From Macrostomum lignano (taxonomy: Eukaryota), in NCBI GenBank assembly GCA_002269645.1, contig NIVC01000306.1:115343-179342 (forward strand): DNA of 64,000 nt, written 5' to 3'. Below the pieces are notes generated by a model that worked only from the letters and a program-made list of their open reading frames with translations, made no database searches and was not told the origin of the DNA. Position 1 is the first letter of the stretch. Every line of letters starts with the position of its first letter. The position numbers and the translations under genes were made by a program. Positions 1,365 through 62,413 of the stretch are shown one piece after another.

Positions 1365-17347
<15,983 letters not shown>

Positions 17348-24495: not shown

Positions 24496-28396
<3,901 letters not shown>

Positions 28397-29374: not shown

Positions 29375-31830
29375 GTACTATTTACAACCCAGCTTGAGCC
29401 ATAGACTAATCTCAGAAAACTTTGCCAGAACTGAGACCAAAATATAAGCAAACAAAGCACCATAGACCAGGTGCGGGCAAATTCCGGCACCCGCATGTAG
29501 CCTGCAAAGCCTCTCTATCCGGCCCTCGGATCCTTTTAAACTTCACAATAGCAATTCGGCCTGCTCAAGGTTTGTGCCCCGTCTCTGCTCCTTACTCCTT
29601 CTTTTATCTCATCTCCTCTCTCCTCTCCCCCTCTTCTCTCTTCTCTCTTCTCTCTTCGCTCCTCTCTCCTCTCCTTCTCTCCTCTCTCCTCTCTCCTCTC
29701 TTCTCCTTCTCTGCTCTATTTTCTCCTCTTTCCTCTCCATAATGATTTAATGGACGAATACGCCAATTGACCCTGCTGGCGAATATGATCGCGACAGTTT
29801 TGGTCTCGGACCTGTCCGTCCATTGTTCAGCAGAGCGAATAAAGTTTTGTAAAAGATCTCTAAGGGTTTCAGGTGACGGCCCGCATGCCATGCACGGCTG
29901 TGACATCATCGACATAACCGACCTTAATGATGGGGTCAAGATCACAGAACTTACTGTGGTCTGTGGTCTGTGGTCTGTCTGTGTTCTGTAGTCAAGATGG
30001 CTGTCCTAATGGAGCTCATCGATTACCATGTTCCAGAGAACTGGAGAAAGAACACCGCCTTGGGGGCTGCCTTTGCAGATGTTTATCATCCGTTGGTGGC
30101 CCAGCAGGTGCGCGGTGGCAGTACGAAAACTGATCGTATACATGATCCACCTGATAAGGTGCGAGTGGGAGTGATCAGGGGGTCGGGCCTGGCTGGCTCG
30201 TTCGAGATAAACGCTGTAAGCATCGCCTCCAGTGTTTTCCTGGGTTTTCAGTGGGCGAGTCGTCGGCTCTCTTGACTGAGGAAAGTTTGGACATTTTGTC
30301 CTGCGTAAACGCTTTAACGATCCTGGAGGTGGTGACCTCGAGTTCCTCACAGTTTTCGCGTCACTTGTTTGTTTCGGCGTTCCTGACCCTGCCTCTTGAA
30401 TCCGTGGATTGTGTTCAGGTAGGTGGTTTGGTCGGCCAAGTTTTTAATTTTCTGGGCCCTACGGTGAAGCCTTTTGGTTCTGCGACGGAGGTCGCCAAGC
30501 TGCGGGTTCCACCATGGGGCCGGCTGTTTGCCTTTATTTGCCCGAGGCTTCGAAGGCAGCAGTGAGCGAGTCCGTGAGCACGGCCGCAAAGTTATCTGCT
30601 TCCTCGCAGGTGTTGGTGGAGACTGGAGCGCTAGTGCAACGATAGGTCTCCTTCCGGACACTCCTGAAAGTAGTCCAGTCGGTAATCCTAGCATTCCGTT
30701 TCCAGTACAGCTGGTCTGCGTTTCGGGCGCTGGCCAGCTTAAAAGAGATGAACTTGGGATTGGAGAGGGACGCCCCAGGAAGCACCCGCCACTCCCTACT
30801 AGTGCTCTGGAGAAGCCTGGGCGTGGCAAGGGCGTTGTTGAAGGTAGGGGTACTACCCGAGTTGCAGAACTTAAGGGTTGTAGTTGTAGTATAGGTCAGG
30901 AAGTCTTCACCTCTCTGGTTGATTTCAGAACTGCCCCAGTGGGTGTGGTGGGCGTTGATGTCGCCTGCCACAAGCAGCTCATAATTTCTGGTGGAGCAAA
31001 GCTCTACCAATGTGACAAGCTCTCCCAGGGAGTATGTCTTCAGATTGGACAACACAGAGTCCCTGGTGGACAGGTCCGATCTGATCCATGCGTTAATAAA
31101 GCTAGACACCACGATACAGGATCTTGGTGCCAGGTTTTCCTCCCCGGTGCCAGCGGTTAAAAACTGGTAGCCGGAGGGGACGTTTTGTGGGCTGCCCCTG
31201 AGCGTCCAAGGTTACTGGATAAGAATGATTCCTGGTGCGTTGTGCTTCATGAGGTTGACTGAAGCAGCAACGCTGTGCTGCAGGTTGACCTGCAAGCAGT
31301 GAATGCCCTGAGAGACGGTCATGCCTACTGTCCAGGGCCGGAGAAAAGCAACTCATCCTCATTTCTTAGCCTTCTCGGTGAGGGTTGAGTCGTGGAGGTG
31401 GACGCGGCACCCGTGGCAGGTGAGACACTTAGCCGCACTGCAACTGAGTTACGGCTGCTGCCTTTGCCTTGCGCCCGGCCGTCAAAAGTCTGAACTCGGC
31501 CGGCAACATCCTCCTGGAGGCAATCCCACCAGTTGGATGGCTGAGCCGTGCCGTCGTCCAGTTCCTCCGACTGGCTTTGTGCGGTGTTGCGAGCGGCACG
31601 AGTCCGCTCGAGTTGAAATCTCAGAGACTGAGCTTCATCAAGTGCGCGCTGAACTTGCACGATGGAACGCTCAACGCCATGCAGTAACTCGACACATTTC
31701 AGCGCGCTCCACCCCGCCTGATGCAGACGAGGTCGCGCACGTCTTTAGCAAGCTCTGGTTAGTGTAGCGCGACGTGTCATCTGGTGCTACGTGCCTCAGG
31801 AGCTCCTTGACTGCGTTTGCTAGAGAATTG
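29375..31830 (-). mobile_element. Decayed non-LTR retrotransposon (R1/LOA-like LINE): ORF1 remnant plus APE endonuclease and RT fragments
   Basis: ORF1 remnant stops (TAG) just before ORF2 ATG 31322. Then LQVNLQHS..IILIQ*PW, VAGDINAHHTHWGS, NSGSTPTF (APE), PAPWWNPQL, KGSPQGGVLSPVLWNMVIDEL, GYVDDV (RT catalytic), TLRDLLQ..AEQW, RTWS..LIFW..VYGS. Contains stops, frameshifts, an internal deletion and a (CT)-rich insertion at about 29590-29740. Confidence 0.88.
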
Positions 31831-32196: not shown

Positions 32197-35100
32197 CTAC
32201 CGATACAAGGCCCTGGCTCTATCAAAGTTCAAATTCATGAGATCTCGCATGGCTATTGACAGCACAATGGCAGCAACTTCGGCAAAGGAAAGCAGCAGGC
32301 CCGAAGTGCCAAGAGAACAGACTATTACCGTAAATTTATCACTAATTTTCTCCATACAGAAGTCAGTACAGGGACAGCTTTGAATTTCTTCGCTCGAAAT
32401 AGTCGATTTATTTAATTCATTTATGCAGCAGAGATGCTGCACTTTAGCCTGAGTGCAGCAGTCCTGCTCCGAGCAGGGTGGATGCCCCAGCGGATCGCTG
32501 ACGTACCCGGAATGGTACAGGCCGCAGCATTTGTATTTTGTCTGCAAAATTTGATTCGAAGAATTGTTTTGTGTTGCGTCTCACGCGCATACCACTCGTA
32601 TCATGCTACTGTTGAGTAAAGTGAAAGCACTGAATATTAATAACTATTTTGCTTAGATTCACTATAGCTTTTTGCAGCCCATTTGGGCTTACGCGCATTG
32701 AATTTAATCCAAGATACGAGCTACGTTTGTCAAAGTAATGGAGCTTTTGTCTATGGTAGCAAGGCTGGCACAGCGGCATTTAATTTGGTCCAACAAGCAT
32801 CAATTTGGTCCATTTAGTTCATTTGCAGCTCAGTCCCAGAATTGTGGACCATATGCTAGGCTGTTGAACGAATGTCATTGGCTTGTGATCGAAGCACTCG
32901 ACGGAGGTGAACACCCAAAGGACATTGCAAGGTTGCTGAATGTAAAAGAAAAGGTGGTTTACAGCATCCAGGAGCGCCTTGAAACTCTGCCGGCAGAGAT
33001 TGCCTGCGAAAGGGTGGCAATCGCCAAGGAAAGTTGCTCGAAAGCCTCAGGTCCAACTGCTACTCGATGCAGTGGAGACGAACCCTTTGTTGACGTTTCA
33101 GAAAATGCAGCAGAAGTTGAGGGAACAGCTCCAGTTGGTTATCAGATTTCGACTATCAGCAGAGCTCTGGAAAAGCAACTGAAAATTTTTGGTAGAGACG
33201 CTGACATTCCAGCGGTGCGCAACAACCTGCAGACGGTTGAGAGAAGGCAAGAGTTTGTCCAATGGCTCACGAGTGTTTGGACCAAATGGATGCTTGTTGG
33301 ACCAAATCAAATGCCGCTGCGCCAGCCTTGCTACCATAGACAATAGCTCCGTTACATTGGCAAACATATCTTGGATTAAATTAAATGCGCGTAAGCCCAA
33401 ATGGGCTGCAAAATGCTATATTAAAAGCGATATAAAATACACTCAGCAAAAAGTAGAATAATTCCACTCCGAAACACGCAGTGGAAAACATAGGGAAGCT
33501 TTAATAATCCCGTTCTCTAGGCCATAAATCTTCACTCTCTCCACGCCAGAAAATTGCGTCACTTCGGACAGAGATCTGAAAAAATGATGACTTAGACTTA
33601 ACCGGAGGGAGATCAAGGCGGTCACCAACGCCTTCTCTTGTCATGGTTGCTTTGCCAGGGATCGCAATCTCAAGGGGCGGGATCCGCAATGAAGAGTGTA
33701 TATTATTGAAGTTCGTTTCGAAAGTTTGGAAAGAAACAATGGAGCTGGTAATGTTATAGCGTCGTAGGGGGCGCGCTTCAGGAACTGACGAAAGACGGAG
33801 TGACGGAGTTGCCGAAGCGCCGACAAGTGCGCGCGCATGTCTTCGACGGTTGAATGCAAATTAAGTCGAGAACATCAACAAACCATCATTTTACTAAACT
33901 TTTAACAAAAATACATGTAGTTCTTGTTTCGGTGATGCACCAAGGACTACTACAGTATAAGGATGCAACACTTGAAATCTTTGGAAAATATCTTGAAGGC
34001 CACTTTTCGCCGAAAAATACACTACGGAGATAGGAAGTTATCAGTTTTTCAGCACAAAAACTGTTATTGCTTTCGATAGGAGGCAGACCCAGTGTTCATC
34101 TTTTGATATGTTGTGCCTTTTTTCTAGCTCTATTGATATTCATAAAGCCTTTTGTTTAGAAAATTAGGATTATTTTCTTATTCTACGTACAATTGCATGT
34201 CCTGTGCCTAAAAACCATTGAAATGGCACGGCCCAGCTCATTGGTTTTATGAATCTATTTTGTCATTCTCAGCTGCTGACTGTGTAAAAATATGTGTAAC
34301 AGAGATGATAAAATAGATTCATAAAACCAAAGATTCGAGCTGTGCCATGCACTTTTATGATTTTTAGGTACAGAAAATGTGCGTAGAATAAAAAATTAAT
34401 ATCAAAACAACATATCGACAAAAGGGGGCCGTAGCCCAGCGGTCTAGCGCAGTCTCTGGTGTGCCAGCGGCCCAGGCTCGATTCCAAGTGCAGTCACATT
34501 AATTTGGGGCTGAATTGGAATCTCGGCTTGGCTCTGCTCGTGCAATCAATGGCCTTGAGAGCCAACCCCCCAAGGCGCAGTGAAGTGTACATGCCTAACG
34601 ATAATATAAAGTTAGGGCCGCTGTACACTCCTGTGTGAGTGTGTGCTTGCGTACGTATCCGCGCGCTTGTATGCCTGCTCAGGGGAGTCGGCGGAATGGG
34701 CAGTAATGCCTCTCGCCGGTTGTGTGCCTATGTCGCTTAAAGTGCGCCAGGGTGCACACAACCCCCTGCCTCTAAAAAAAAAAATATCGACAAATCAAAA
34801 TATGAAAATTGGGTCTGCCTCCTATCGAAAGCAATAACAGTTCTTGTGCTGGAAAAATGAAAACTTCCTATCTCCGTAGTGTATTTTTCGACGAAAAGTG
34901 GCCTTCAAAACTTTTTCCCATGAAACGTGAGTGTCCCGTCCTGTATATACGCTGCTTTAGTTGTCCTTGTGATGCACTTCAAAAAATCACAGGCCATCAA
35001 AGTTTCATTTAATGCGAATTTACCTGAGCCTCTGCTCGCTTCGCATCGCCGGCCCGATTCCAGCCGGCCTCAATAATGGTTTTGATCTGATTAGAGTCGG

Positions 35101-35404
35101 CTGCTAAGCAGCTGCACGAGACTGAGAACTGAATTAGACAGAGAGGGAATGTACACAACAGGTACATAAACAGTACAGTGTGATTCTTCATCCAGGCACC
35201 AGCGAAACCAACAATCGATATCGGAATCAGAGCATTCGAACACGCGTCCAACGAATCCAGCAGGTTGATCTTGGACACCACCGGCGTGTTGATTGTCAAC
35301 TGAATGGCGACTTTCAAAGCGATGCCGGCTAGAAGAAAGGCAACATTAATTGACAGCAAAGCCGTTCTGGTGCTACTTAGGTAGCACCAGAAACTGTACA
35401 ACAT
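32197..35404 (-). CDS. Tetraspanin of the TSPAN13/31 (Tsp97E-like) subfamily, about 241 aa, 2 exons
   Basis: complement(join(32197..32541,35024..35404)), phase-0 intron. Four hydrophobic segments, IQFSVSCSCLA, CCG motif, DPLGHPPC. Confidence 0.88.
32665..33418 (+). mobile_element. Tc1/mariner-IS630 family non-autonomous deletion derivative in the tetraspanin intron
   Basis: About 150-bp imperfect TIRs (TAGCTTTTTGCAGCCCATTTGGGCTTACGCGCA... / ...TGCGCGTAAGCCCAAATGGGCTGCAAAATGCTA) flanked by TA. Internal ORF has transposase HTH-like segments (IEALDGGEHPKDIARLLNV; TISRALE..RNN) and no DDE domain. Confidence 0.8.
34424..34783 (+). mobile_element. tRNA-derived SINE (about 360 bp), antisense in the tetraspanin intron
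   Basis: 5' GGGGCCGTAGCCCAGCGG (Pol III A box) and GGCTCGATTCC (B box), 3' poly(A) tail, 11-bp TSD ATATCGACAAA at 34412-34422 and 34784-34794. Confidence 0.85.
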
Positions 35405-40920: not shown

Positions 40921-42030
40921 TTTGCTTTTGATGAGTGTTTGCTTTTGGTGAAGTTTGCTATTAGGCAATGTCAAAATCAAAATCTAAATAAGAAATAGAA
41001 CAAAAAATGCTACAGTGAAAATTTCTATGATAAAGACAGCCTCAGAATTATTTGTATAGAACAACCAAGGGTTAAAGTTAGGATAGCAAGCCCCAATGGG
41101 GTTGGAATTGGTTAGTCCATCACAATATACTAAATCTCTAAGATCTGTTTGTTTCTATATACTTAAAATGGTCTATTGGTACATGTGTGTGATTAATTTC
41201 AGAAAAAAAACAGCTCAATTATAAAATCTCATTGGAGTCATTTTTATATATGTTATAATAGTTATTATTCAATTCTATTGCTATACCACTAATAAGTTTT
41301 ACTATTGCCAATTTCATTGTGATTCAACTATTATGACCAAATAGTTATTTTTATCCTATAATGTGTATAATGTCTTTAATCCTATATGTTTTATCCTATA
41401 AAATTAATTTGGTCTGTCCTCTATATAGGCTTATATATTGAATAGGAATCTATCAAAATTTGAATCTTAATCTTGCTCAATCACAATTTTTATCCTATTC
41501 TAACCTCTATTTTTTACCTGATAGTATTGATTTAGAAAGGCTTAGCAGAGGTCACTCCTTCCATATATTGTATTGTTTTCCTTTGTCTTTTTCAGTGGTA
41601 AATATGGTTGCTTGTTGAATTTTATTCAGCTGTTTAATGCTTTTTTGCATGTAATATTATTTGCTTTTCCTAAAAAACAATGAAAATGTGTATATTAAGG
41701 CAAGTGAAGTTACCAAAAAAGACAAAAAACAAAAAATGATGAAAAATTAATACAATAAAACAGACTTTTTTTAGCTTAGTTAATGCTTTTAGAAATTATT
41801 CTTAGCTGATGCAGTAATCTATAAAATGTTAAAACTGTTTTTTAAAATACCTTTTGATATATGGTTACTAATTTAGAAGAAAGAACTCTTAATGGTATTT
41901 ATAATTTGTAATAAAATTAATGGTATGGAAACAAGTTATAGAACTATATTTTAGCAGCATTTTTTGATTTCTAAAAGATAAAAATAAGCCAAAATTATCT
42001 TTGAAATCAATTTCTGATTACTCTATTAGC

Positions 42031-45000
42031 ATGAGTTTCTCTACTCGCTTATCAAAGCTGAATATCGCTCCAGTTTTCATTGCCACACCAGATGAGTTGG
42101 ATGACCTAGCTGGTTATGTAACTGAAATTGTTAAACAGAAACTGTCTGCATTGGATACTGGATGTCTGATATGCAAGCTGTGTCCACCTGAACAAAAATC
42201 AGTAGCATCCTCTAATTTTGAGAATAGTGAGGTTGAACCCGACTTCAGCGGATGTCTGCTGCCATTCTGTTTGGACATTGATTTGTTTAAATTTTGTCCT
42301 ACTAGGCAAAAAATTGGTGGTAATGATTTACCAGGCCTGGCTGCAGAATGCCATCTGGCTGAGTTTGTTGCACGCAATGAGGCAACTGAGTGTGGGCAGT
42401 TTTCCATGACACCTGCAGCTGTTGAGGCTGAGTTCTGGAGCCGCTTTGAGTCGGGTAAGTTTACTACATCTGAAGCGAATAGGACTCTAGTGTGTCATTA
42501 TGGAATAATATTGCACTAGCTCACCTGAAGGATTTTGAAGGAATGGTAAGGTGCACTAGATCACCTAGATGAATGGGCGGCGCTCGCCTCCCCGCTGCGT
42601 CTTCGGACCGCACTAGCTCACCTGAAGGATCGGGAAGGAATGGGAAGGTGCACTAGCTCACCTGAAGGATCGGGAAGGAATGGGAAGGTGCACTAGCTCA
42701 CCTGAAGGATCTGGAAGGAATGGGAAAGTTCACTAGCTCACCTGAAGGATCGGGAAGGAATGGGAAGGTGCACTAGCTCACCTGAAGGATCTGGAAGGAA
42801 TGGGAAAGTTCACTAGCTCACCTGAAGGATCGGGAAGGAATGGGAAAGTGCACTAGCTCACCTGAAGGATCTGGAAGGAATGGGAAAGTGCACTAGCTCA
42901 CCTGAAGGATCGGGAAGGAATGGGAAGGTGCACTAGCTCACCTGAAGGATCGGGAAGGAATGGTAAGGTGCACTAGCTCACCTGAAGGAATGGGAAGGTG
43001 CACTAGCTCACCTGAAGGAATGGAAAGGTGCACTAGCTCACCTGAAGGATCGGGAAGGAATGGTAAGGTGCACTAGCTCACCTGAAGGAATGGGAAGGTG
43101 CACTAGCTCACCTGAAGGAATGGAAAGGTGTACTAGCTCACCTGAAGGAATGGAAAGGTGCACTAGCTCACCTGAAGGATCGGGAAGGAATGGGAAGGTG
43201 CACTAGCTCACCTGAAGGATCGGGAAGGAATGGGAAGGTGCACTAGCTCACCTGAAGGATCTGGAAGGAATGGGAAGGTGCACTAGCTCACCTGAAGGAT
43301 CTGGAAGGAATGGGAAGGTGCACTAGCTCACCTGAAGGATCGGGAAGGAATGGGAAGGTGCACTAGCTCACCTGAAGGATCTGAAGGAATGGGAAGGTGC
43401 ACTAGCTCACCTGAAGGATCTGAAGGAATGGGAAGGTGCACTAGCTCACCTGAAGGATCGGGAAGGAATGGGAAAGTGCACTAGCTCACCTGAAGGATCG
43501 GGACGGAATGGCAAGGTGCACTAGCTCACCTGAAGGATCTGAAGGAATGGGAAAGTGCACTAGCTCACCTGAAGGATCTGAAGGAATGGGAAGGTGCACT
43601 AGCCCACCTGAAGGATCTGAAGGAATGGGAAGGTGCACTAGCTCACCTGAAGGATCTGAAGGAATGGGAAGGTGCACTAGCTCACCTGAAGGATCTGGAA
43701 GGAATGGTGCAGTATTCATTCTTAAAACATGAATACTATGTAAATAGAAAAACTGAGTGAAAAAGCATATTGGTGTTCCTCATTTTTAGCGTCTTCATCT
43801 TCAACAGTTGAGTACGGCAAGCAATTGCCCCTAGTAGAAGAAGACGGCTGGGAACTAGCCAACAGTTTATCTGACTGTTCAGGCGTTATCAATATTGCAA
43901 GCACTGAGTCGCCGAACGACTGGTGGCGCTGTCAAATCGGTTCAAGATTTTTGTCTTCAACTGGCAATGGAGCCGGTGTCTGGCAGTGTGACTGGTCTGG
44001 CTCAGTGTCCTACCTGCACTGGGGCGAGGCCAGGATTTGGTATTGTCTGGCTTCCAACGACAATGGAAATCTTGGATGGCGTCTAGAACAAAGACCTGGC
44101 GAGTTTGTTGTGCTGATGCCTGGCGCCAGGTATGCTTGGCTTGACTGCGGCGTTAATTTTTTAGAATTGGCTCGGTTTTGTCCATTCAACTGGCTGCCGG
44201 AAGCTCTGACTGCTGGCATGCCTCAAGAAGTTCGGCGTAGGGCTGTGCTAGAAGCAGCTGAAGCTGTGGTTGAGGAGTCTTTAGCTACTGTTGAAGTTAA
44301 TAATGCATCGAGACAGCAGCAACAGACACGACTGTTGCTGTCTGCTGATCTAGCTGAGTTGCTGCTCAATGAGATTGAGGTGAGAGATTAGGGTTTGGTT
44401 GGGGGTGTTTTCATTTTCAAGTTACAGGCGCTTTATTTTATCGACAACTGTTCTCTGGACACAACTATTCTTATCTGGATACAACCGATCTTTTTTTCGA
44501 CACAACCAAGCTTCTCTGGACACAATTAATTATCTCTGGACACAACTAATTATCTCTGGACAGAACTAATTATCTCTGGACACAACTAATTATCTCTGGA
44601 CACAACTAATTATCTCTGGACACAACTAATTATCTCTGGACACAACTAATTATATCTGGACACAACTAATTATCTCTGGACACAACTAATTATCTCTGGA
44701 CACAACTAATTATCTCTGGACAGAACTAATTATCTCTGGACACAACTAATTATCTCTGGACACAACTAATTATCTCTGGACACAACTAATTATCTCTGGA
44801 CACAATTAATTATCTCTGGACACAACTAATTATCTCTGGACACAATTAATTATCTCTGGACACAACTAATTATCTCTGGACACAACTAATTATCTCTGGA
44901 CACAATTAATTATCTCTGGACACAACTAATTATCTCTGGACACAATTAATTATCTCTGGACACAACTAATTATCTCTGGACACAACTAATTATCTCTGGA

Positions 45001-47910
45001 CAGAACTAATTATCTCTGGACACAACTAATTATCTCTGGACACAACTAATTATCTCTGGACACAACTAATTATCTCTGGACACAACTAATTATATCTGGA
45101 CACAACTAATTATCTCTGGACACAACTAATTATATCTGGACACAACTAATTATCTCTGGACACAACTAATTATCTCTGGACACAACTAATTATCTCTGGA
45201 CACAATTAAAAATCTCTGGACACAATTAATTATCTCTGGACACAACTAATTATCTCTGGACACAACTAATTATCTCTGGACACAATTAATTATCTCTAGA
45301 CACAACCAATCTTCCTTAGACACAACTAAACTACTTCTCTGGAGTCTAGACACAACCAATCTTCTGGACACAACCAATCTTCTGGACACAACCAATCTTC
45401 TGGACACAACCAATCTTCTGGACACAACCAATCTTCTGGACACAACCAATCTTCTGGACACAACCACCATTCTTATACACAACCAACTTCTCTGGACCCA
45501 ACTGATATTCTCTGGACACAACCAATCTTCTCTGGACACAACTAATCGTCTCTGGACACAACTAATCGTCTCTGGACACAACTAATTATCTCTGGACACA
45601 ACCAACTATACTGGAAACAATCAGTCTTCTCTTAACACAATGACTCATCTCTGTACACAACCAATCCTGTCTGGACAGAATCAATCCTTCAGACTCAACC
45701 GATATATTCTCTAAGGCTGTACTACAGACACAAATAATATTGTTTTAGACACAAGAAAGTATTGTGAACGCATCTGCGCTCATACTTACTGTATAATCTA
45801 TGATCAATCCACAGTCTCTGCTAAAGTCGAGCTCTGATGAACAACAGCAACAGCAACAACAAACAGAAGCCGCAGTTGCGCAAAACGATTTGCTCAGTCG
45901 AGCTCGAATTCAACTAATCTCCCTACGCGATCAGTACAATGAGTGGCGATCTACGGTAGATTCTATCAGTAGGAAATCTAGCATAGCTAAGAAGCCGGAC
46001 AATGGGCATTCGGAAGAGTCTGACAATGATAATAAGCCGGAACTATCCGAGCTTGAGTTGCTAGCCTGGCGCGGGGTTGCCGAATTGCACCTGTCCCCGG
46101 TTAGTTGCGCACCTTTGGCTCGGTTACGCAATCGGGTGCGTTCCTGTCGGCGAGCCCGACAAGTTGTCAGCGCCCTGCTGACTGCCGCGGCAGCCTCCAC
46201 TGTTGCTGCCACCGCATCATCTTCTTCTTTCGTTAAAGAAGACATTGCCGAAGAAGAAATTGTCGAAGAGAAAGAGTCGCCTACTGTTGCTATTAAAAAA
46301 GAAGACGAACCAATCGAAGCGGAGCAGGAAGACTACGACGAGGGGTCGCCTAGCGAAACAGTTCGAGTTCGCCAGCTGCGCAAACGGCTGCGGTTTCCCA
46401 GATGCGGCGGCCGGGTCGGCCGATGCGTCAACAAAATCGACGAGGCCAGCTTTGTCGCCGTGTGTCGCCGGTTAGACCGGCTGCCGTGTCGGCTATCGGA
46501 CCATGAGGAATCCGGTTTTGCCGGTCTTCGAACTCAGGTCGACAGTTGGCGCTCCCGTTGCCAGGCTCTGATGCAGAACTTCGAAGCCGATCCTAGCGTG
46601 GAACCGGATTTTGACATCGTAGCTTCCTTAGCAACCGAAGCGGCTAGTCGACTGCCGGTTGCTATGGACGCTTGGCCCTGGCTAGCCGCTGTGTACGAGC
46701 GTCAGCTGTTTTTAACCGAGGCTCAATCGATTTTAAACGAACTCGAAGTTGATAACAAAGAGCAAGATGATGGCGAAGAGAAATCTACTGTTAAGAAGTC
46801 TTCTACTAATAGAAGAAAGCTGTTTCCAAGCGAGTTGTCGCAGTTATGCGCCAAAGGTTCATCGCTGCGAGAGCAGACGTCTAAGTCAGAAGCAGCTCTG
46901 GCAGGGCTGTTGAATTTGCTGAGAACCGGTCAGGATTTGGAGGCTAAGTAAGTTGTAATTTTGTGTAGTTTTGCAACCATTCTGGTACATTATACTCGTG
47001 GGTTCTTTTTTAAATAAAAAGCCTTCTAAACAGTCTTGTAAACGTATTCATAAACAGCTGATTTTTACACAGTTTTTATACTCATCTAACCTATCGATAA
47101 TAAACAGCCTATAAACACACCATTATCCAACTAATCTACTCATAAACATCTTCTAAACCTACTCATAAAGCAGCCTATAAACACACCCTTAACCTATTAG
47201 TCTACCCAAAAACAGTCTGGAAACCTGTTCATAAACATCCTGTGCAGCCGTTTTTAAACACCCTGTAAACCTGCTTATAAACATCCTGTTAGCCGACTTA
47301 TAAACATCCTGTAAACCTACTCATAAACATTCTGTAAACTAACTCATAAACATCATGTAAACCTTTTTATAAACATACTGTACAACCACTCATAAATCAT
47401 CCTGTAAACCTACTCATAAACAACCTGTAAACCTACTCATAAACAACCTGTAAACCTACTCACAAACATCCTGTAAACCTACTCATAAACATCCTGTAAA
47501 CCTACTCATATGCATCTGTGAACCTAAACACACTTTTAGCTTATTAACCTACTCATGAACATCTTTTAATCTTACTTATAAACAGTCTCTAAACCCACCC
47601 TTAAACAGCTTAGAGATTAACATTTTAAAAAATTCTAAAGCTACTTATAAACAGCATATAAAGCTATCCCTAAGCATCTAATAATAATTATTTTATTTTT
47701 AAATAGTCTCTTACCATAGTGTCTAACACCTACTCCTAACACCTGTAAAACCCTACTCTGGAACACCTTTGTCTCTACCTAACAAATGAAAATTTACAAA
47801 TCCCAGTTATTTCTTTGTACACGCAGAGCACGCAACTGCCTGGAGACACGTCAACGGCTGCAAAAGATGCAGCGCCAGCAGCAGCAGCAGCAGTCTTCTT
47901 CTTCTAGTTC

Positions 47911-47951
<41 letters not shown>

Positions 47952-50900
47952 TGCAGGCCTCCCTACTGGACCTTGACGATCTGCAAAAACTGGTTGACGA
48001 CGCCGAGCGACTGCCGCTTCGTTTGACTTCGGTGAAATCGGCCGCCGATCTGTTAGCTCGAATTCGACAATGGTCAGAGACGGTTGCTATGGAAACTGGG
48101 CAGGGTAGCGCGGTAGCCTATCCGACTCTGGGAACGCTGGAGCGACTGCTAGATGAGGGTCGCAAGTATTGCGTGAAGCTGGAGCAGCTGGTGGAGCTAG
48201 AAAATCACGTGGCCCAAGCTAAGGGCTGGCTAGATCGGACTGCCCGGAACTTTCTAAAGAAGTACTCTCCTCTGTCGCTTATACAGGTACGCCTGCTTGA
48301 GTTTTTAGTGCTACATCCTCAGTTGCTAGGCTGGGAACTCTTGTAGATCCTTGGTTGCTAGGCTAGGAACTCTTGTAGATCCTCAGTTGCTAGGCTGGGA
48401 ACTCTTGTAGATCCCCAGTTGCTAGGCTGGGAACTCTTGTAGATCCTCGGTTGCTAGGCTGGGAACTCTTGTAGATCCTCAGTTGCTAGGCTGGGAACTC
48501 TTGTAGATCCTCGGTTGCTATGCTGGGAACTCTTGTAGATCCTTGGTTGCTAGGCTGGGAACTCTTGTAGATTCTTGGTTGCTAGGCTAGGAACTCTTGT
48601 AGATTCTTGGTTGCTAGGCGTTGAACTCTTAAGGCTTACCTCCCAGATCCTCAGTTGCTGTGCCAGCCTCCCAGAGTGTCAGTTGCTGGGCCAGCCTCCC
48701 ACATCCTCAGTTGCTGGGCCAGCCTCCCAGAGTGTCAGTTGCTGTGCCAGCCTCCCAGAGTGTCAGTTGCTGTGCCAGCCTCCCAGAGTGTCAGTTGCTG
48801 GGCCAGCCTCCCAGAGTGTCAGTTGCTGGGCCAGCCTCCCAGATCCTCAGTTGTTAGGCCAGCCTCTCAGATCCTCAGTTGCTAGGCCAGCCTCCCAGAT
48901 CCTCAGTTGCTAGGTCAGCCTCCCAGAGTGTCAGTTGCTGGGCCAGCCTCCCAGATCCTCAGTGTTGGGCCAGCCTCCCAGAGTGTCAGTTGCTGTGTCA
49001 GCCTCCCAGATCCTCAGTTGCTAGGCCAGCCTCTCAGATCCTCAGTTGCTAGGCCAGCCTCCCAGATCCTCAGTTGCTAGGTCAGCCTCCCAGAGTGTCA
49101 GTTGCTGGGCCAGCCTCCCAGATCCTCAGTGTTGGGCCAGCCTCCCAGAGTGTCAGTTGCTGTGTCAGCCTCCCAGATCCTCAGTTGCTGGGCCAGCCTC
49201 CCAGAGTGTCAGTTGCTGGGCCAGCCTCCCAGAGTGTCAGTTGCTGTGCCAGCCTCCCAGAGTGTCAGTTGCTGGGCCAGCCTCCCAGAGTGTCAGTTGC
49301 TGGGCCAGCCTCCCAGATCCTCAGTTGCTGGGCCAGCCTCCCAGAGTGTCAGTTGCTGGGCCAGCCTCCCAGAGTGTCAGTTGCTGGGCCAGCCTCCCAG
49401 AGTGTCAGTTGCTGGGCCAGCCTCCCAGAGTGTCAGTTGCTGGGCCAGCCTCCCAGAGTGTCAGTTGCTGGGCCAGCCTCCCAGAGTGTCAGTTGCTGGT
49501 CCAGCCTCCCAGAGTGTCAGTTGCTGGGCCAGCCACTGTAGATGCACATACAAAATTTCCCTAAAAAATTCATCACGCACAGGTGCTTTTGCCCCGATCG
49601 TCTCGCTCGTTTTTACGCGACTACACGAAGCCAAACGCCGGTCAAGGCGGGCAGAGCTCCGGTCCAAAGAAGGGCGCGGTATCGAAGAAAGCTCCTGCCA
49701 AAGAAGAGAACAGCAACGGCGGCCAGTCGGCTCAACAGCAGCAGCAGAACTTTTTGGAGCCGGTTGATCGATTCTCGGACGATATTACCGACGCTGAAAG
49801 GGTGGCTCTCTATCAGGAGCTGGCCGCTACAGAACTGAAAAGTGCGATGGCTGCTAGGTGAGTCAGAGTATTAGTTTATTCTTATGCCTTTTCGTATGCT
49901 AGTGTCAAATTGTTCATTATTTTTTACAACTTTTTATATTTAGAATCGGTTTGTGATATCCAATATTGATGTATGATATGAATTATCGATTTTTAATACC
50001 CAATATCGATTTATGATACTCATTATCGATTGATGATATTCGATTTCGATTTATGATATTTCGTAACAATTGCTAATTTCCAGTATCTATTTATACATTC
50101 AGTATCGATTTATGATATTCAATATCGGTTTATTATATTCGATTTCGATTTATGATATCCAGTATCGATTTTTCTAATACTCAATATCTTTTTATGATAT
50201 TCAATATCGATTTATGATATTCAATATCGATTTATGATATCCAGTATCGATGTATGAAATTCAATATCGATTTATGATATTCAATATCGATTTATGATAT
50301 TCAATATCGATTTATGATATTCAATATCGATTTATGATATTCAATATCGATTTACGATATTCAATATCGATTTCTAATATTCAATATCGATTTATGATAT
50401 TCAATATCGACTTATGATATTCAATATCGATTTATGATATTCAATATCGATTTATGATATTCAATATCGATTTATGGTATTCGATTTCGATTTATGATAT
50501 CCAGTATCGATTTTTCTAATATTCAATATCTTTTTATGATATCCAATATCGATTTATGATATCCAGTATCGATGTATGAAATTCAATATCGATTTATGAT
50601 ATTCAATAACGATTTATGATATTCAATATCGATTTCTAATATTCAATATCGATTTCTAATATTCAATATCGATTTATGATATTCAGTATCGATTTATGAT
50701 ATCCAGAATCGATTTATGATATTCAATATCGATTTATGATATTCAGTATCGATTTATGATATCGAGTATCGATTTATGATATCCAGTATCGATTTCTAAT
50801 ATTCAATATCGATTTATGATATCCAGTATCGATTTCTGATATCCAGTATCGATTTATGATATTCAGTATCGATTCACGATATTTATGATCGATTTGTTGC

Positions 50901-53900
50901 TTGATGTATCGATCACTGACATTTGATGATCGATTTACAATACTTACAGACACCGCAAAGGCCACGATCTAGTCCTGGCATCCACGTGCATCTGCGGCCA
51001 GCGCAGCTCCAATTCCAGCAACAGCTTCATGCTGCAGTGCGAACTGTGCCGGCACTGGTACCATGCCCAGTGCGTCACTTTGCCCAAGTATTTGAAGCCG
51101 AAGACGCTGACTAACGCCGGCCAATCGGCAATGCGGGCCGCTCTCAGGGATCTGAAATATCTGTGCCAGGCTTGCGAGCGCGGCAGGCGGCCTCGGGTTG
51201 AAACTATTCTCAGTTTGCTGCTGGCTCTGCAACGCCTACCGTGTCCTCTACTAGCCGGGGTAGCTCTGCAGTGTCTAACCGAGCGTGCGATGTCCTGGCA
51301 GGATCGGACCCATTGTCTATTGTTAAGCAGTCCCGAATTGCGCCGGGCGCTAGTCTGCTTGGCTAGAACTATGAAACTGCAGCTGCCTGATAAACTGTTG
51401 CGCCAGCTAAACACCATGGTTACCTCGGGTGGCGAGGCTGCTATGGCCTCTAGCGTGGCTGCAATTAGCGCTAATAGCGGCCTAACCCTGGCTGAGCGGG
51501 GTGCCGCTAATGCGGCTGCCGCTGCCGCTGCCGCTGCCACTTCGACTTCGTCATCGGCGGCATCGGCGGCTGCGGCTGCAGCGGCGGCGGCGCAGTCTTC
51601 GTCGTCTAGAAAGCCGCGAAAGTCGCCGCTGTTTCCTCGCGGGCCGTCGCAATCAGGCGGTGGCAACAATACGGCGGCCTCGACTACGTCGGCTGCCGCC
51701 CCAGCTGGTCCTGGCAGCAGCAGCCTGAGCATCTCGCCGCCTCCGACAATGTCGACAAGTGGCGCCGGCGATTTCATGACCTCGCCGACCTCTTTAATGC
51801 CGGCCCGTAGGCCTCGCCTGACTCTGAGCCCGGCGGCCCGGTCTCAACTCGAGTCCGCTATGCTCGAAGGCGACCTATTGGAAGTCTCCATGGAGGAGTC
51901 CACCTGGCTGTGGCACCTGCTGCAGGCCAGCGCGCCCGACGCTGACGTTAATGAGTTTGGCGACGACGACAGAGGAGTCGGTCTTATTGCCTGCGGCCGA
52001 GGAGCTGACAGCGACAACGAGGACAATGACAACGACGAAGAGAGCAGCAGCGAAGGTGACGAAGAAGGTGACGACGCTATGGACTCCTCCTCTGTGCAGT
52101 CCTCGGCTAAAGCGGCCGCCTCCACGGCCGCAGGCGTCGCTGCCTCCGCCGCTGACGATGACGATGGCGACGATATGTCTGACGCGTATTCGACGTCGGC
52201 CATCGCTCTCGGCCCCGTGATGCTCCCGTCGGCGGCGTCTACAGCGTCGTCGTCGTCGAAGTCAAAATTGGCAAAACGACAAACAAAAGGACATCTTGTA
52301 CTTTCTCAGCAGCAGCAGCCGCAGCAGCAAAGGCAGCACGCTAGAAGAGGTCGCAAACCTGGTAGCTCATCTGTGGTGTCGGTTGCTAAGCGACCGGCTG
52401 GTTCAGCCGACGCCGACAAAGATGCCGCTCCAGCCGATAAGCGTCGGCGCAAAGTCCGGACTCCTATTGAGGCGGTGAGTCCGACAGTTTTATGCTCTAA
52501 GCTGTTAATGCCTCACTTTCTGTCATCTCAGCAATTCGTCCCATAAGCCTTGATATATCAGCAATTCTCGCATAAACTGCAAATCCCTAAACTACTAATA
52601 TCGAAGCCAATATTCCCTAACCCATTAATCTCTAGGGTACTAATCCCTGAGTTGTTAATACCTAAGCCACTAATCCCTAAGCTACTAATCCCTAAGCCAC
52701 TAATCCCTAAGCCACTAATCCCTAAGCCACTAATCCCTAAGCTACTAATCGCTAAGCTACTAATCCTTACGGTACTAATCTCTAAGCTACTAATCTCTAA
52801 GCTACTAATTTCTAAGCTACTGATCCCTAAGCTACTAATCTCTAAGCTACTAATCCTTACGGTACTAATCCCTAAGCTACTAATCCCTAAGCCACTAATC
52901 CCTAAGCTACTAATCTCTAAGCTACTAATCTCTAAGCTACTAATCTCTAAGCTACTGATCCCTAAGCCACTAATCCCTAAGCTACTAATCCCTAAGCCAC
53001 TAATCCCTAAGCTACTAATCGCTAAGCTACTAATCCTTACGGTACTAATCTCTAAGCTACTAATCTCTAAGCTACTAATCTCTAAGCTACTGATCCCTAA
53101 GCCACTAATACCTAAGCTACTAATCCTTACGGTACTAATCTCTAAGCTACTAATCCCTAAGCCACTAATCCCTGAGCTAATAATCCCTAAGCCACTAATA
53201 CCCAAACTACTATTCCCTAAGCCACTGATCCTTAGGCTACTAATCCCTAAGCTACTAAGGCTCTATCAAGCATTCACTGTTCGGTCTTCTTGCAGGCAGC
53301 CGAGAGGCGTAGAAAGCACTATACTCAACCTGCGGCATCTCATGCTGCCTCGTCCGCTGCCGCTTCTGTGGCTTCATCTTCGGCCTCAGCTTCCAAGCGA
53401 CAGCAAGCCCGACATCAACAGCAGCAACAGCAGAAGCGTCGAAAAGGCGGCTGGAGCGAGGACTGCGCAGCGGTGAAATGTCACCAGCCGACTGGAACTC
53501 AGGTGCAAATTTGTACTCGTAGTATCTCATATGCCATCATTATCGCATCTAGATACCAATATCCCGTCTATCCCGTTGAGATTTAAATCTTACATAGATT
53601 TACAAAATCTCGCTTACATCCAGAAAAAATGACCTAAATCTTAAAAATCTCACTCATATCCTCAAAATCTCACCTAGATTCTCAAATCTTCCCCATATCC
53701 TCAAAATTTCATCTAAATTCTCAAAATCTCCCCATAAATTAAAAAATCTCACCCATATCCTCCAACTCTCCCCTACATCCTCAAAATCCCACCTACATCC
53801 TCAAAATCCCACCTACATCCTCAAAATCCCACCTACATCCTCAAAATCCCACCTACATCTTCAAAATCCCACCTACATCCTCAAAATCCCACCTACATCC

Positions 53901-54809
53901 TCAAAATCCCACCTACATCTTCAAAATCCCACCTACATCCTCAAAATCCCACCTACATCCTCAAAATCCCACCTACATCAACAAAATCCCACCTACATCC
54001 TCAAAATCCGATCTAGATCCTCAAAATCTCCCCTACATCCTCAAAATCCGATCTAGATCCTCAAAATCTCCCCTACATCCTCAAAATCCGATCTAGATCC
54101 TCAAAATCTCCCCTACATCCTCAAAATCCCACCTTCATCCTGAAAATCTCACCTACATCCTCAAAATCCCACCTACATCCTCAAAATCTCACCTACATCC
54201 ACAAAATCTCACCTACATCCTCAAAATCTCACCTACATCCTCAAAGTCTCACCTACATCCTCAAAATCCCACCTACATTCTCAAAATCTCACCTACATCC
54301 TTAAAATCTCCCCTTCATCCTCAAAATCTCACCTACACCCTCAAAATCCCATGTATATCCTCAAAGCTCACTTACATCCTCAAAATCTCAAAATCCATTA
54401 TACTAAAAATTCTCCCCTATATTCTCAAAATCTCATCCTTAAAAAACCTCATCCTTAAAAAACTTTAAGAATTATTAAATACATAAAAAATCTATCGCTC
54501 ATGCAGGTGAACTGGGTGGAATGCGATCAATGCCAGCAGTGGTTTCATTGGATCTGCGTTGGAGTCCGCTCTGTTGACGAGCTGGCCGACTCGTACCTGT
54601 GCCCCACCTGTTTGCAACAGTCTAACAGTCGCGACGCGTCTCAACAGAGCGACTTTGATGAAGAAGACTTCGATAATGAGGATATTGAAGAGCTGCTGCC
54701 TACGCCTGATGGAGAAGAGTCTGGCTCGGATGAGGATTCCCATGAGGAACTGATTAGTCAACAAGATGCTGACGATGACGACGAATCAGCTGGATTGGCT
54801 GAGAATTGA
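42031..54809 (+). CDS. KDM5: KDM5/lid-like protein, predicted catalytically inactive: JmjN-degenerate JmjC-PLU-1-PHD2-PHD3, about 1638 aa, 8 exons
   Basis: join(42031..42454,43790..44379,45815..46947,47827..48286,49583..49857,50950..52474,53296..53502,54507..54809); 4917 nt, all phases consistent. Jmj[27 protein letters not shown]; EAEFW..VEYG; [11 protein letters not shown]; QRPGEFVV; PHD2 [12 protein letters not shown] and [26 protein letters not shown]; PHD3 [19 protein letters not shown]. Confidence 0.9.
42515..43710. repeat. 40-bp minisatellite (CACTAGCTCACCTGAAGGATCGGGAAGGAATGGGAAGGTG)n, KDM5 intron 1
   Basis: About 30 units with shorter deletion variants. Confidence 0.95.
44455..45700. 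repeat. 20-bp minisatellite (CTGGACACAACTAATTATCT)n, KDM5 intron 2
   Basis: Tandem units, with 18-bp variants near the 3' end. Confidence 0.95.
47030..47580. repeat. About 23-bp degenerate minisatellite (CTGTAAACCTACTCATAAACATC)n, KDM5 intron 3
   Basis: Tandem units. Confidence 0.8.
48310..49535. repeat. 32-bp then 28-bp minisatellites, KDM5 intron 4
   Basis: (GTTGCTAGGCTGGGAACTCTTGTAGATCCTCA)n grading into (CAGTTGCTGGGCCAGCCTCCCAGAGTGT)n. Confidence 0.93.
49960..50935. repeat. 20-bp minisatellite (TATCGATTTATGATATTCAA)n, KDM5 intron 5
   Basis: Tandem units. Confidence 0.92.
52575..53260. repeat. 15-bp minisatellite (CTACTAATCCCTAAG)n, KDM5 intron 6
   Basis: Tandem units; same family at 56945-57370. 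Confidence 0.92.
53640..54400. repeat. 20-bp minisatellite (CCTACATCCTCAAAATCCCA)n, KDM5 intron 7
   Basis: Tandem units. Confidence 0.92.

Positions 54810-55610: not shown

Positions 55611-62413
<6,803 letters not shown>

Follow-up and report, generated by a model that had tools for sequence, protein, structure and literature searches.

A KDM5 paralogue of the flatworm Macrostomum lignano with a degenerate demethylase half and a conserved PLU-1-PHD2-PHD3 module is a probable pseudo-demethylase

The present study describes a KDM5 gene of the flatworm Macrostomum lignano, which lies in a stretch of 64,000 nucleotides of contig NIVC01000306.1 (assembly GCA_002269645.1, positions 115,343 to 179,342 of the forward strand; the whole stretch is called the window here, and positions are counted from its first letter). 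The gene is probably a lineage-specific duplicate of the canonical paralogue Mlig012680 that has become a pseudo-demethylase, with a relaxed N-terminal half (N-half) and a constrained PLU-1-PHD2-PHD3 module in its C-terminal half (C-half), and its product would likely act as a reader of trimethylated lysine 4 of histone H3 (H3K4me3), as a scaffold or as a competitor. A single frame-consistent model was obtained for it, which runs from 42031 to 54809 on the + strand and gives 1638 amino acids from 8 exons without an internal stop, all 7 introns being GT-AG. When 1.84 billion representative proteins were searched exhaustively with HMMER, its best matches were KDM5s.

The JmjC domain of the window gene is degenerate. 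Pfam JmjC matches amino acids 236-268 only, that is profile positions 79-111 of 114, with 22-30 bits, while the other M. lignano paralogues reach 144-145 bits. Custom hidden Markov models (HMMs) of the KDM5 domains were run with --max on all 2373 six-frame fragments of the window, and the JmjC model found exon 2 (E=7e-13) through profile positions 73-97 and 139-179 of 182 only. The JmjC block measures 130 amino acids in the window gene and 185-197 in other KDM5s. Besides an internal deletion of 37 residues its first half is also shortened, with ~25-30 amino acids missing upstream of the HxE motif. A set of 12 acoel, arthropod and M. lignano KDM5s has 78 invariant JmjC positions, of which the window gene keeps 24, has substituted 31 and has deleted 23. 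The cofactor ligands are among the losses. For iron, H and E of WHIE have become Q and D in WQCD, and H of AYHAGF has become Y in ARYAWL; for 2-oxoglutarate, Y of CYVGM has become Q in CQIGS, N of SINYLH has become S in SVSYLH, and K of EPKTWY has become R in EARIWY. The only histidines in amino acids 1-338 are H108 and H218, neither of which stands at a ligand position. The fold-core motifs EFW, VEYG, YLHWGE, GEFV and NF.E..F..WLP are kept. It has been shown that a single mutation of H483 or E485 abolishes the activity of KDM5A (PMC10578193). The JmjC domain of the window gene is predicted to be catalytically dead and, judged by its residues, the usual mode of binding iron or 2-oxoglutarate is closed to the N-terminal relic.

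The original prediction held that ARID, PHD1 and C5HC2 had been lost naturally from this gene and that a short linker joins the end of JmjN to the pre-JmjC helix within one exon. Both claims are confirmed. The JmjN tail, the junction and the pre-JmjC helix are all inside exon 1, every peptide quoted in the prediction is present in the model, and the linker is 13 residues long. It stands in for about 285 canonical amino acids (~88-372 in an alignment to Mlig012680), which comprise ARID, a linker and PHD1 and are interrupted by two introns. The JmjN relic was detected in two pieces by a custom HMM of KDM5 JmjN and its tail (E=9e-8) and by BLAST/tblastn to KDM5 JmjN (E=3e-5 to 5e-3), and Pfam JmjN is unmatched at E<=1. 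The pre-JmjC helix retains 7 of 9 invariant KDM5 positions. Among the 2373 fragments, the JmjN match in exon 1 and the JmjC match in exon 2 both stand clearly above what chance would give. The best PDB matches by phmmer are the engineered KDM5B delta-ARID/PHD1 chains 6ek6 and 5a1f; the alignment crosses their artificial junction, and the natural and engineered junctions are ~3 residues apart. It should be noted that the same junction is found in three N-half copies (P0006, P0156 and P0157) and is not an assembly artefact, because the copies are independent.

A Pfam scan of the spliced protein gave no JmjN, ARID, KDM5_C-hel or zf-C5HC2 at E<=1, and as a positive control the same scan detected all seven domains in both other M. 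lignano KDM5 paralogues. The absence of ARID and C5HC2 matches agrees with the prediction. Over the 64-kb window, tblastn with five canonical KDM5s found no coding sequence for ARID, PHD1 or C5HC2 on either strand, the custom HMMs of ARID and C5HC2 reached no better than E=2.4 and E=0.26, respectively, and the PHD1 HMM gave only cross-matches to the PHD2 and PHD3 exons. Amino acids 273-400 contain no Cys. Intron 2 is, as had been proposed, mostly a 20-bp repeat (85% minisatellite) without room for the finger; its non-repeat sequence comes to 72 + 137 bp, less than the ~162 bp required for C5HC2. ARID, PHD1 and C5HC2 have been deleted inside exons and are not missed exons. Two other readings of the N-terminus were rejected. 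A full-length MAFFT alignment put amino acids 44-95 under PHD1, but phmmer, BLAST and the JmjN HMM align amino acids 77-95 to the JmjN tail PPF..D...F.F.PR.QRL. A hidden intron of 47 nt in the JmjN insert would, on excision, shift the frame into a stop, and an independent model keeps the segment coding.

The C-half is conserved. PLU-1, PHD2, PHD3, the LEGDLLEV motif and another conserved motif show 42-66% identity to canonical KDM5; exon 6 is 56-66% identical to Mlig012680, and PHD3 63%. The Pfam PLU-1 match covers profile positions 88-337 only, and Pfam PHD matches in two stretches (E=8e-12). The zinc ligands of PHD2 and PHD3 are intact as Cys4-His-Cys3 patterns, and both tryptophans of the VNWV.CD...WFH motif are present in PHD3. 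It is most likely that PHD3 has remained a reader of H3K4me3. Relative to other KDM5s, PLU-1 is enlarged by a long acidic, Ala/Ser-rich insertion (~amino acids 400-545, window 46000-46400) and a poly-Q/poly-S tract (~amino acids 735-770, window 47850-47960).

Mlig012680 (P0160, PAA67014.1) has the full JmjN-ARID-PHD-JmjC-C-hel-C5HC2-PLU-1-PHD architecture, and its 6 exons were mapped exactly at its locus (L001). A neighbour-joining tree of the C-half (397 columns) unites the three KDM5 genes of M. lignano in one clade in 200/200 bootstraps and places the window gene as sister of Mlig012680 in 197/200, with equal branch lengths; the C-halves of the two are ~45% identical. Window intron 2 (NEIE/SLLK) agrees in position and phase with canonical intron 3 (LLDEIK/ELQ), and window intron 4 (SLIQ/VLLPRS) with canonical intron 4 (SLLQ/VLLPRS). 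Since two introns are common to both genes, the comparison points to a DNA-level duplication that gave rise to the window gene and Mlig012680. The domain losses are derived, because the sister Mlig012680 and the outgroup paralogue Mlig015885 both keep the domains. No closer relative in another species was found in the collections searched.

It had also been proposed that the N-half is the more diverged one and that selection became asymmetric after the duplication. This is supported by identities to a horseshoe-crab KDM5 outgroup and by separate trees of the two halves. Identity to the outgroup is lower in the window gene than in Mlig012680 for JmjN (39% and 58%), the pre-JmjC region (29% and 51%) and JmjC (42% and 66%), whereas it is higher for PLU-1 (32% and 26%), the PHD2 block (47% and 44%) and PHD3 (52% and 47%). 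The branch of the window gene is several times longer than all others in the N-half tree, and it is long in that half only. Amino-acid differences between copies amount to 12/341 for the N-half, and to 2/1320, 4/1377 and 5/1424 for the other two paralogues.

These data suggest the following course of events. After duplication of Mlig012680, constraint on the N-terminal catalytic cassette would have been relaxed. One in-frame genomic deletion of ~1.7 kb in the present exon 1 could have taken ARID, PHD1 and two introns, and a deletion inside exon 3 could have taken the C5HC2 finger. The JmjC barrel would have lost about one third of its length together with every iron and 2-oxoglutarate ligand, while constraint on the PLU-1-PHD2-PHD3 module would have remained equal to that on the canonical gene. 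The protein, which we infer is made, is predicted to be unable to remove H3K4 methyl groups. PHD3 may target it to H3K4me3 chromatin, where PLU-1 and the conserved motifs, including LEGDLLEV, could serve as a scaffold, or the protein could compete with the active KDM5 paralogues.

Several points weigh against this reading. The product is a prediction from the DNA sequence. Exons 3-4 are covered by no protein in a collection of 15 billion sequences, and in public annotation the locus appears as two entries, a 341-residue 'JmjC protein' and a 620-residue 'PHD protein'. Binding of H3K4me3 by PHD3 is presumed from the two conserved tryptophans by analogy with PHD3 of KDM5A. The register of the HxE motif differs between aligners, and the ungapped phmmer register is also without His there. 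Loss of the cofactor residues was considered as proof of a maintained pseudoenzyme fold and discarded as non-significant, since with 31% of the invariant JmjC positions kept, all six would be lost by chance with a probability of ~0.69^6 = 0.11. Either a structural stub has been retained in the N-half, or the N-half may be a decaying spacer that is open only for translation of the C-half. An AlphaFold2 model of the N-half from a 6-sequence alignment (mean predicted local distance difference test score 33, predicted template-modelling score 0.19) was uninformative, and nothing was concluded from it.

A further reading is that the locus gives two products. The functional protein would then start at ATG 45800 or by trans-splicing at exon 3 and would be without the JmjN/JmjC relic, and exons 1-2 would be a separate decaying unit ending in intron 2, as in the 341-residue model; we consider this unlikely. 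It is true that the annotated N-terminal model ends by read-through into intron 2, that ATG 45800 gives an in-frame open reading frame (ORF; MINPQ/SLLK...), and that an N-terminally truncated, inactive KDM5B isoform occurs in human cells (PMC10281864). However, intron 2 is an ancestral phase-0 intron that is also present in Mlig012680, and exons 2 and 3 are in frame across it. The start of the 620-residue model, in mid-exon 5 and without Met, resembles an assembly broken at repeat-filled introns and not a gene boundary, and the N-half ORF is open in three copies. Public databases mis-annotate the window gene as two unrelated fragments.

It could also be supposed that the entire locus is an unprocessed pseudogene in decay, in which a stop codon has still to arise. 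Degradation of the N-half is heavy, copies of it differ in amino acids 10-20x as much as copies of the other paralogues do, and at 90% identity the N-half model clusters with no assembly-derived (Logan) protein. The gaps in annotation and protein coverage named above would fit as well, and extensive recent duplications are known in M. lignano DV1 (PMC5730564). Decay of the whole locus is nevertheless improbable. The reading frame is open for 1638 codons over 8 exons, the 7 introns are canonical, none of the three N-half copies is interrupted, and every PHD zinc ligand is intact. In the C-half tree the branch of the window gene does not exceed that of the canonical paralogue, and in identity to the arthropod outgroup its C-half equals or surpasses it. 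In addition, the divergence from Mlig012680 is old, as the C-half identity indicates, and far too long for an ORF to survive neutrally.

The original prediction implied that the gene encodes a functional minimal KDM5, its naturally joined JmjN-JmjC core acting as an H3K4 demethylase without ARID, PHD1 and C5HC2; this is very improbable. In its favour, the junction coincides with that of active engineered constructs, which are the best PDB matches, the fold-core motifs are kept, and many 2-oxoglutarate oxygenases tolerate Asp in place of Glu as the second ligand. Deletion of ARID and PHD1 also has a minor effect on kinetics in vitro, but in the window gene both iron histidines and three 2-oxoglutarate contacts have gone where one mutation at H483 or E485 kills KDM5A (PMC10578193), the barrel lacks 37 residues and ~25-30 more are missing before the HxE motif, Pfam recognises the last third of JmjC only, and no more than 24/78 invariant positions remain.

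The second derived paralogue, Mlig015885 (P0120, PAA72229.1), has an intact JmjN-ARID-PHD1-JmjC-C-hel-C5HC2-PLU-1 cassette. At the Mlig015885g1 locus (L002 10001-16994, GCA_002269645.1 NIVC01001103.1) PHD2 is deleted inside the last exon, and no PHD3 was found within 10 kb downstream. The KDM5 set of M. lignano thus consists of a full gene, the 'eraser-only' Mlig015885 and the 'reader-only' window gene. Eraser and reader modules could be split between two derived paralogues beside the full-length gene, and if both are expressed and have a function, the two would have subfunctionalised by losing complementary domains; we put this forward tentatively, as a possibility with the balance somewhat against it. 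Roles of KDM5 that are independent of demethylation have been described for Drosophila Lid in meiosis (PMC4975413) and for truncated KDM5B isoforms (PMC10281864), and such roles are hard to part from catalysis. A dead paralogue with the reader module and a paralogue with the catalytic cassette only would let them be tested by single-gene knockdown in a regenerating flatworm. If true, the complementary loss would provide natural separation-of-function KDM5s in an animal amenable to RNA interference and transgenesis. Lineage-specific dead paralogues are common in enzyme families. The complementary partition of domains over three paralogues is a lead worth having, as the flatworm is tractable.

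Table. Positions of the exons, introns and protein features of the window gene.
Feature	Position	Strand	Description
Exon 1	42031-42454	+	aa 1-141, ends in phase 1; start codon, JmjN relic, deletion junction, pre-JmjC helix; ORF and GT donor; identical to P0006
JmjN relic	42067-42315	+	aa 13-53 and aa 77-95, parted by a 23-aa insertion (aa 54-76, nt 42190-42258)
Junction, 13 residues	42316-42354	+	aa 96-108, between the end of the JmjN tail (aa 95, nt 42315) and the pre-JmjC helix
Pre-JmjC helix region	42355-42438	+	aa 109-136, ends EAEFW; aligns to KDM5B 'YTLRTFGEMADAFK...VEKEFW'
Intron 1	42455-43789	+	1335 bp, of which a 40-bp minisatellite (42610-43707) makes up 82%; the canonical paralogue is uninterrupted here
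Exon 2	43790-44379	+	aa 142-338; degenerate JmjC domain and relic of the C-terminal helical domain
WQCD	43981-43992	+	aa 206-209; counterpart of the WHIE HxE iron motif, H to Q and E to D (MAFFT alignments)
37-aa internal JmjC deletion	44044-44079	+	CLASND^NGNLGW; missing canonical 'ApALEtAM...ELF..PDLLHHITTIMNP..LM..GV'
GARYAW	44122-44139	+	aa 253-258; counterpart of PRAYHAGF, distal iron His is Tyr256
Intron 2	44380-45814	+	1435 bp, phase 0; a 20-bp minisatellite (44452-45677, 61.5 copies) makes up 85%
Exon 3	45815-46947	+	aa 339-362 (45815-45886) at the expected place of the helical-domain end and C5HC2; PLU-1 from aa 363 (nt 45887)
PLU-1, Pfam-recognised part	46451-48283	+	aa 551-868, exons 3 and 4; E=7e-21, 75 bits
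Intron 3	46948-47826	+	interrupts PLU-1
Exon 4	47827-48286	+	ends SLIQ/VLLPRS; intron position and phase as canonical intron 4
Exon 5	49583-49857	+	linker preceding PHD2; covered by UniProt model P0007
Exon 6	50950-52474	+	PHD2, post-PHD2 helical region, LEGDLLEV...LLQASAP motif and one further conserved motif
PHD2	50987-51175	+	aa 974-1036; intact Cys4-His-Cys3; exon 6
Exon 7	53296-53502	+	first part of PHD3
Exon 8	54507-54809	+	remainder of PHD3, both cage tryptophans, acidic tail, stop codon

The shorter of the two public models (P0006, UniProt A0A1I8H220, 341 aa) is 100% identical to amino acids 1-338 of the window protein and has the exon 1/2 splice in common with it; it then reads into intron 2 and ends ...NEIEVRD*. 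The longer one (P0007, UniProt, 620 aa) covers the gene from exon 5 on. In P0007 an earlier exon 6 donor (...AIALGP/) is used in the region 52250-52474, by which 75 low-complexity residues are dropped, and an internal acceptor in the last exon (...PTGTQ/SDFDEE; 54507-54650) deletes most of PHD3, as an isoform or as a product of gene prediction. An AG lies one base 5' of the start ATG 42031 (...attag c ATG; 42020-42033), as expected for a spliced-leader trans-splice acceptor. The in-frame ATG 45800 is 15 nt upstream of the exon 3 acceptor, and translation might begin there instead and so leave out the JmjN/JmjC relic.

Word-indexed searches with the full-length query were swamped by poly-Q/A/S words and returned 5 distant KDM5s only; the N-half query returned its own UniProt entry only, and the PHD2-region query returned fragments. 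Exact-protein look-ups with the spliced model, the ORFs 45800-46951 and 51029-52546, P0006 and P0007 yielded no second genomic copy. In the library searched, no paper names Macrostomum together with KDM5.

All 7 introns of the window gene (42455-54506) consist of minisatellite for 54-94% of their length, with different units of 40, 20, 23, 32+28, 20, 15 and 20 bp. The repeat-filled intron 2 is not special, as the introns of the canonical paralogue are also packed with repeats (4 of its 5 introns at L001 3662-8532 are mostly tandem repeat). Simple and tandem repeats make up 15% of the M. lignano genome (PMC5730564). Repeat-filled introns thus appear to be a genome-wide habit of M. lignano and not a trait of the window gene, and they probably explain why the gene is fragmented in older assemblies and annotations. 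Introns 1, 3, 5, 6 and 7 (from 42455, 46948, 49858, 52475 and 53503) are without counterpart in Mlig012680, and the Mlig012680 intron after aa 1342.67 is absent from the window gene, so that only two positions are in common. Introns have been gained or lost on a considerable scale after the duplication.

Elsewhere in the window, neighbouring coding pieces lie at 15036-16713 (+), 29600-31160 (-), 32197-35404 (-) and 60786-61151 (+). The neighbours include exons of a nuclear-receptor ligand-binding domain (Hormone_recep, E=1e-10) with a 15-bp minisatellite between them, fragments of the endonuclease and reverse transcriptase of a retrotransposon of the non-LTR (long terminal repeat) kind, a tetraspanin exon and an RGS-domain exon. 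Very long and pure tetranucleotide arrays occupy 13192-13872, 24828-26010, 57735-58465 and 59112-59906. Their units are (CTAT)n in ~170 copies, (TAGA)n in ~296 copies, (GTTA)n and (GACA)n, and they contain long spurious ORFs in several frames.

The window gene descends from the clade of canonical KDM5/JARID1 genes, which includes human KDM5A-D, Drosophila Lid and Mlig012680. It differs from them in that it is without ARID, PHD1, C5HC2 and a recognisable C-terminal helical domain, its JmjN is split by an insert of 23 amino acids, and its JmjC is shortened and devoid of iron and 2-oxoglutarate ligands. Because four defining features (ARID, PHD1, an active JmjC and C5HC2) are absent, it should be named a KDM5-derived pseudo-demethylase and not a KDM5 demethylase. 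Mlig015885 belongs to the same KDM5 expansion and has also lost domains, but in a pattern that is the mirror image of that of the window gene. The engineered delta-ARID/PHD1 cores of KDM5A and KDM5B (PDB 5a1f, 6ek6, 5e6h and others) join JmjN to the pre-JmjC region at nearly the same residues. However, these cores have a complete and active JmjC, and the KDM5B constructs also have the helical/zinc-finger domain, whereas the window protein has a short, dead JmjC and no finger. The window gene is thus no natural counterpart of the active engineered cores, because its JmjC ligands are lost and the domain is shortened, and citing it as the equivalent in nature of active delta-ARID/PHD1 constructs would be wrong.

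JARID2 (Jumonji) is a catalytically inactive member of the JARID family and a cofactor of Polycomb repressive complex 2 (PRC2), in which the JmjC cofactor residues are lost and action is non-enzymatic. A JmjC without iron ligands is found in both, but JARID2 keeps ARID and C5HC2 and is without PLU-1, PHD2 and PHD3, and in the window gene the reverse is seen. In the PDB search the JARID2 chain 7kso_F was a weak match (E=0.0025, compared with 5e-12 for KDM5B). The window gene falls within the KDM5 clade of M. lignano, so that its inactivation was independent of that of JARID2. In plants, JMJ14-type proteins are active and have an intact triad, a C5HC2 finger and FYRN and FYRC domains. These plant KDM5s (PDB 5ykn, E=1.8e-6) resemble the window gene in having JmjN and JmjC naturally adjacent without ARID/PHD1, but the window protein has no triad, no C5HC2 and no FYR match in Pfam.

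Yeast Ecm5, another protein of this kind, retains ARID and a PHD finger. It is KDM5-like and belongs to the Snt2-Ecm5-Rpd3 complex as a chromatin-targeting subunit without demonstrated demethylase activity (PMC8329514, PMC10841535). Ecm5 is fungal and arose independently, and it is likened to the window gene by description only. By analogy, the window gene may be regarded as comparable in kind to JARID2 and to yeast Ecm5, and as a member of neither family.

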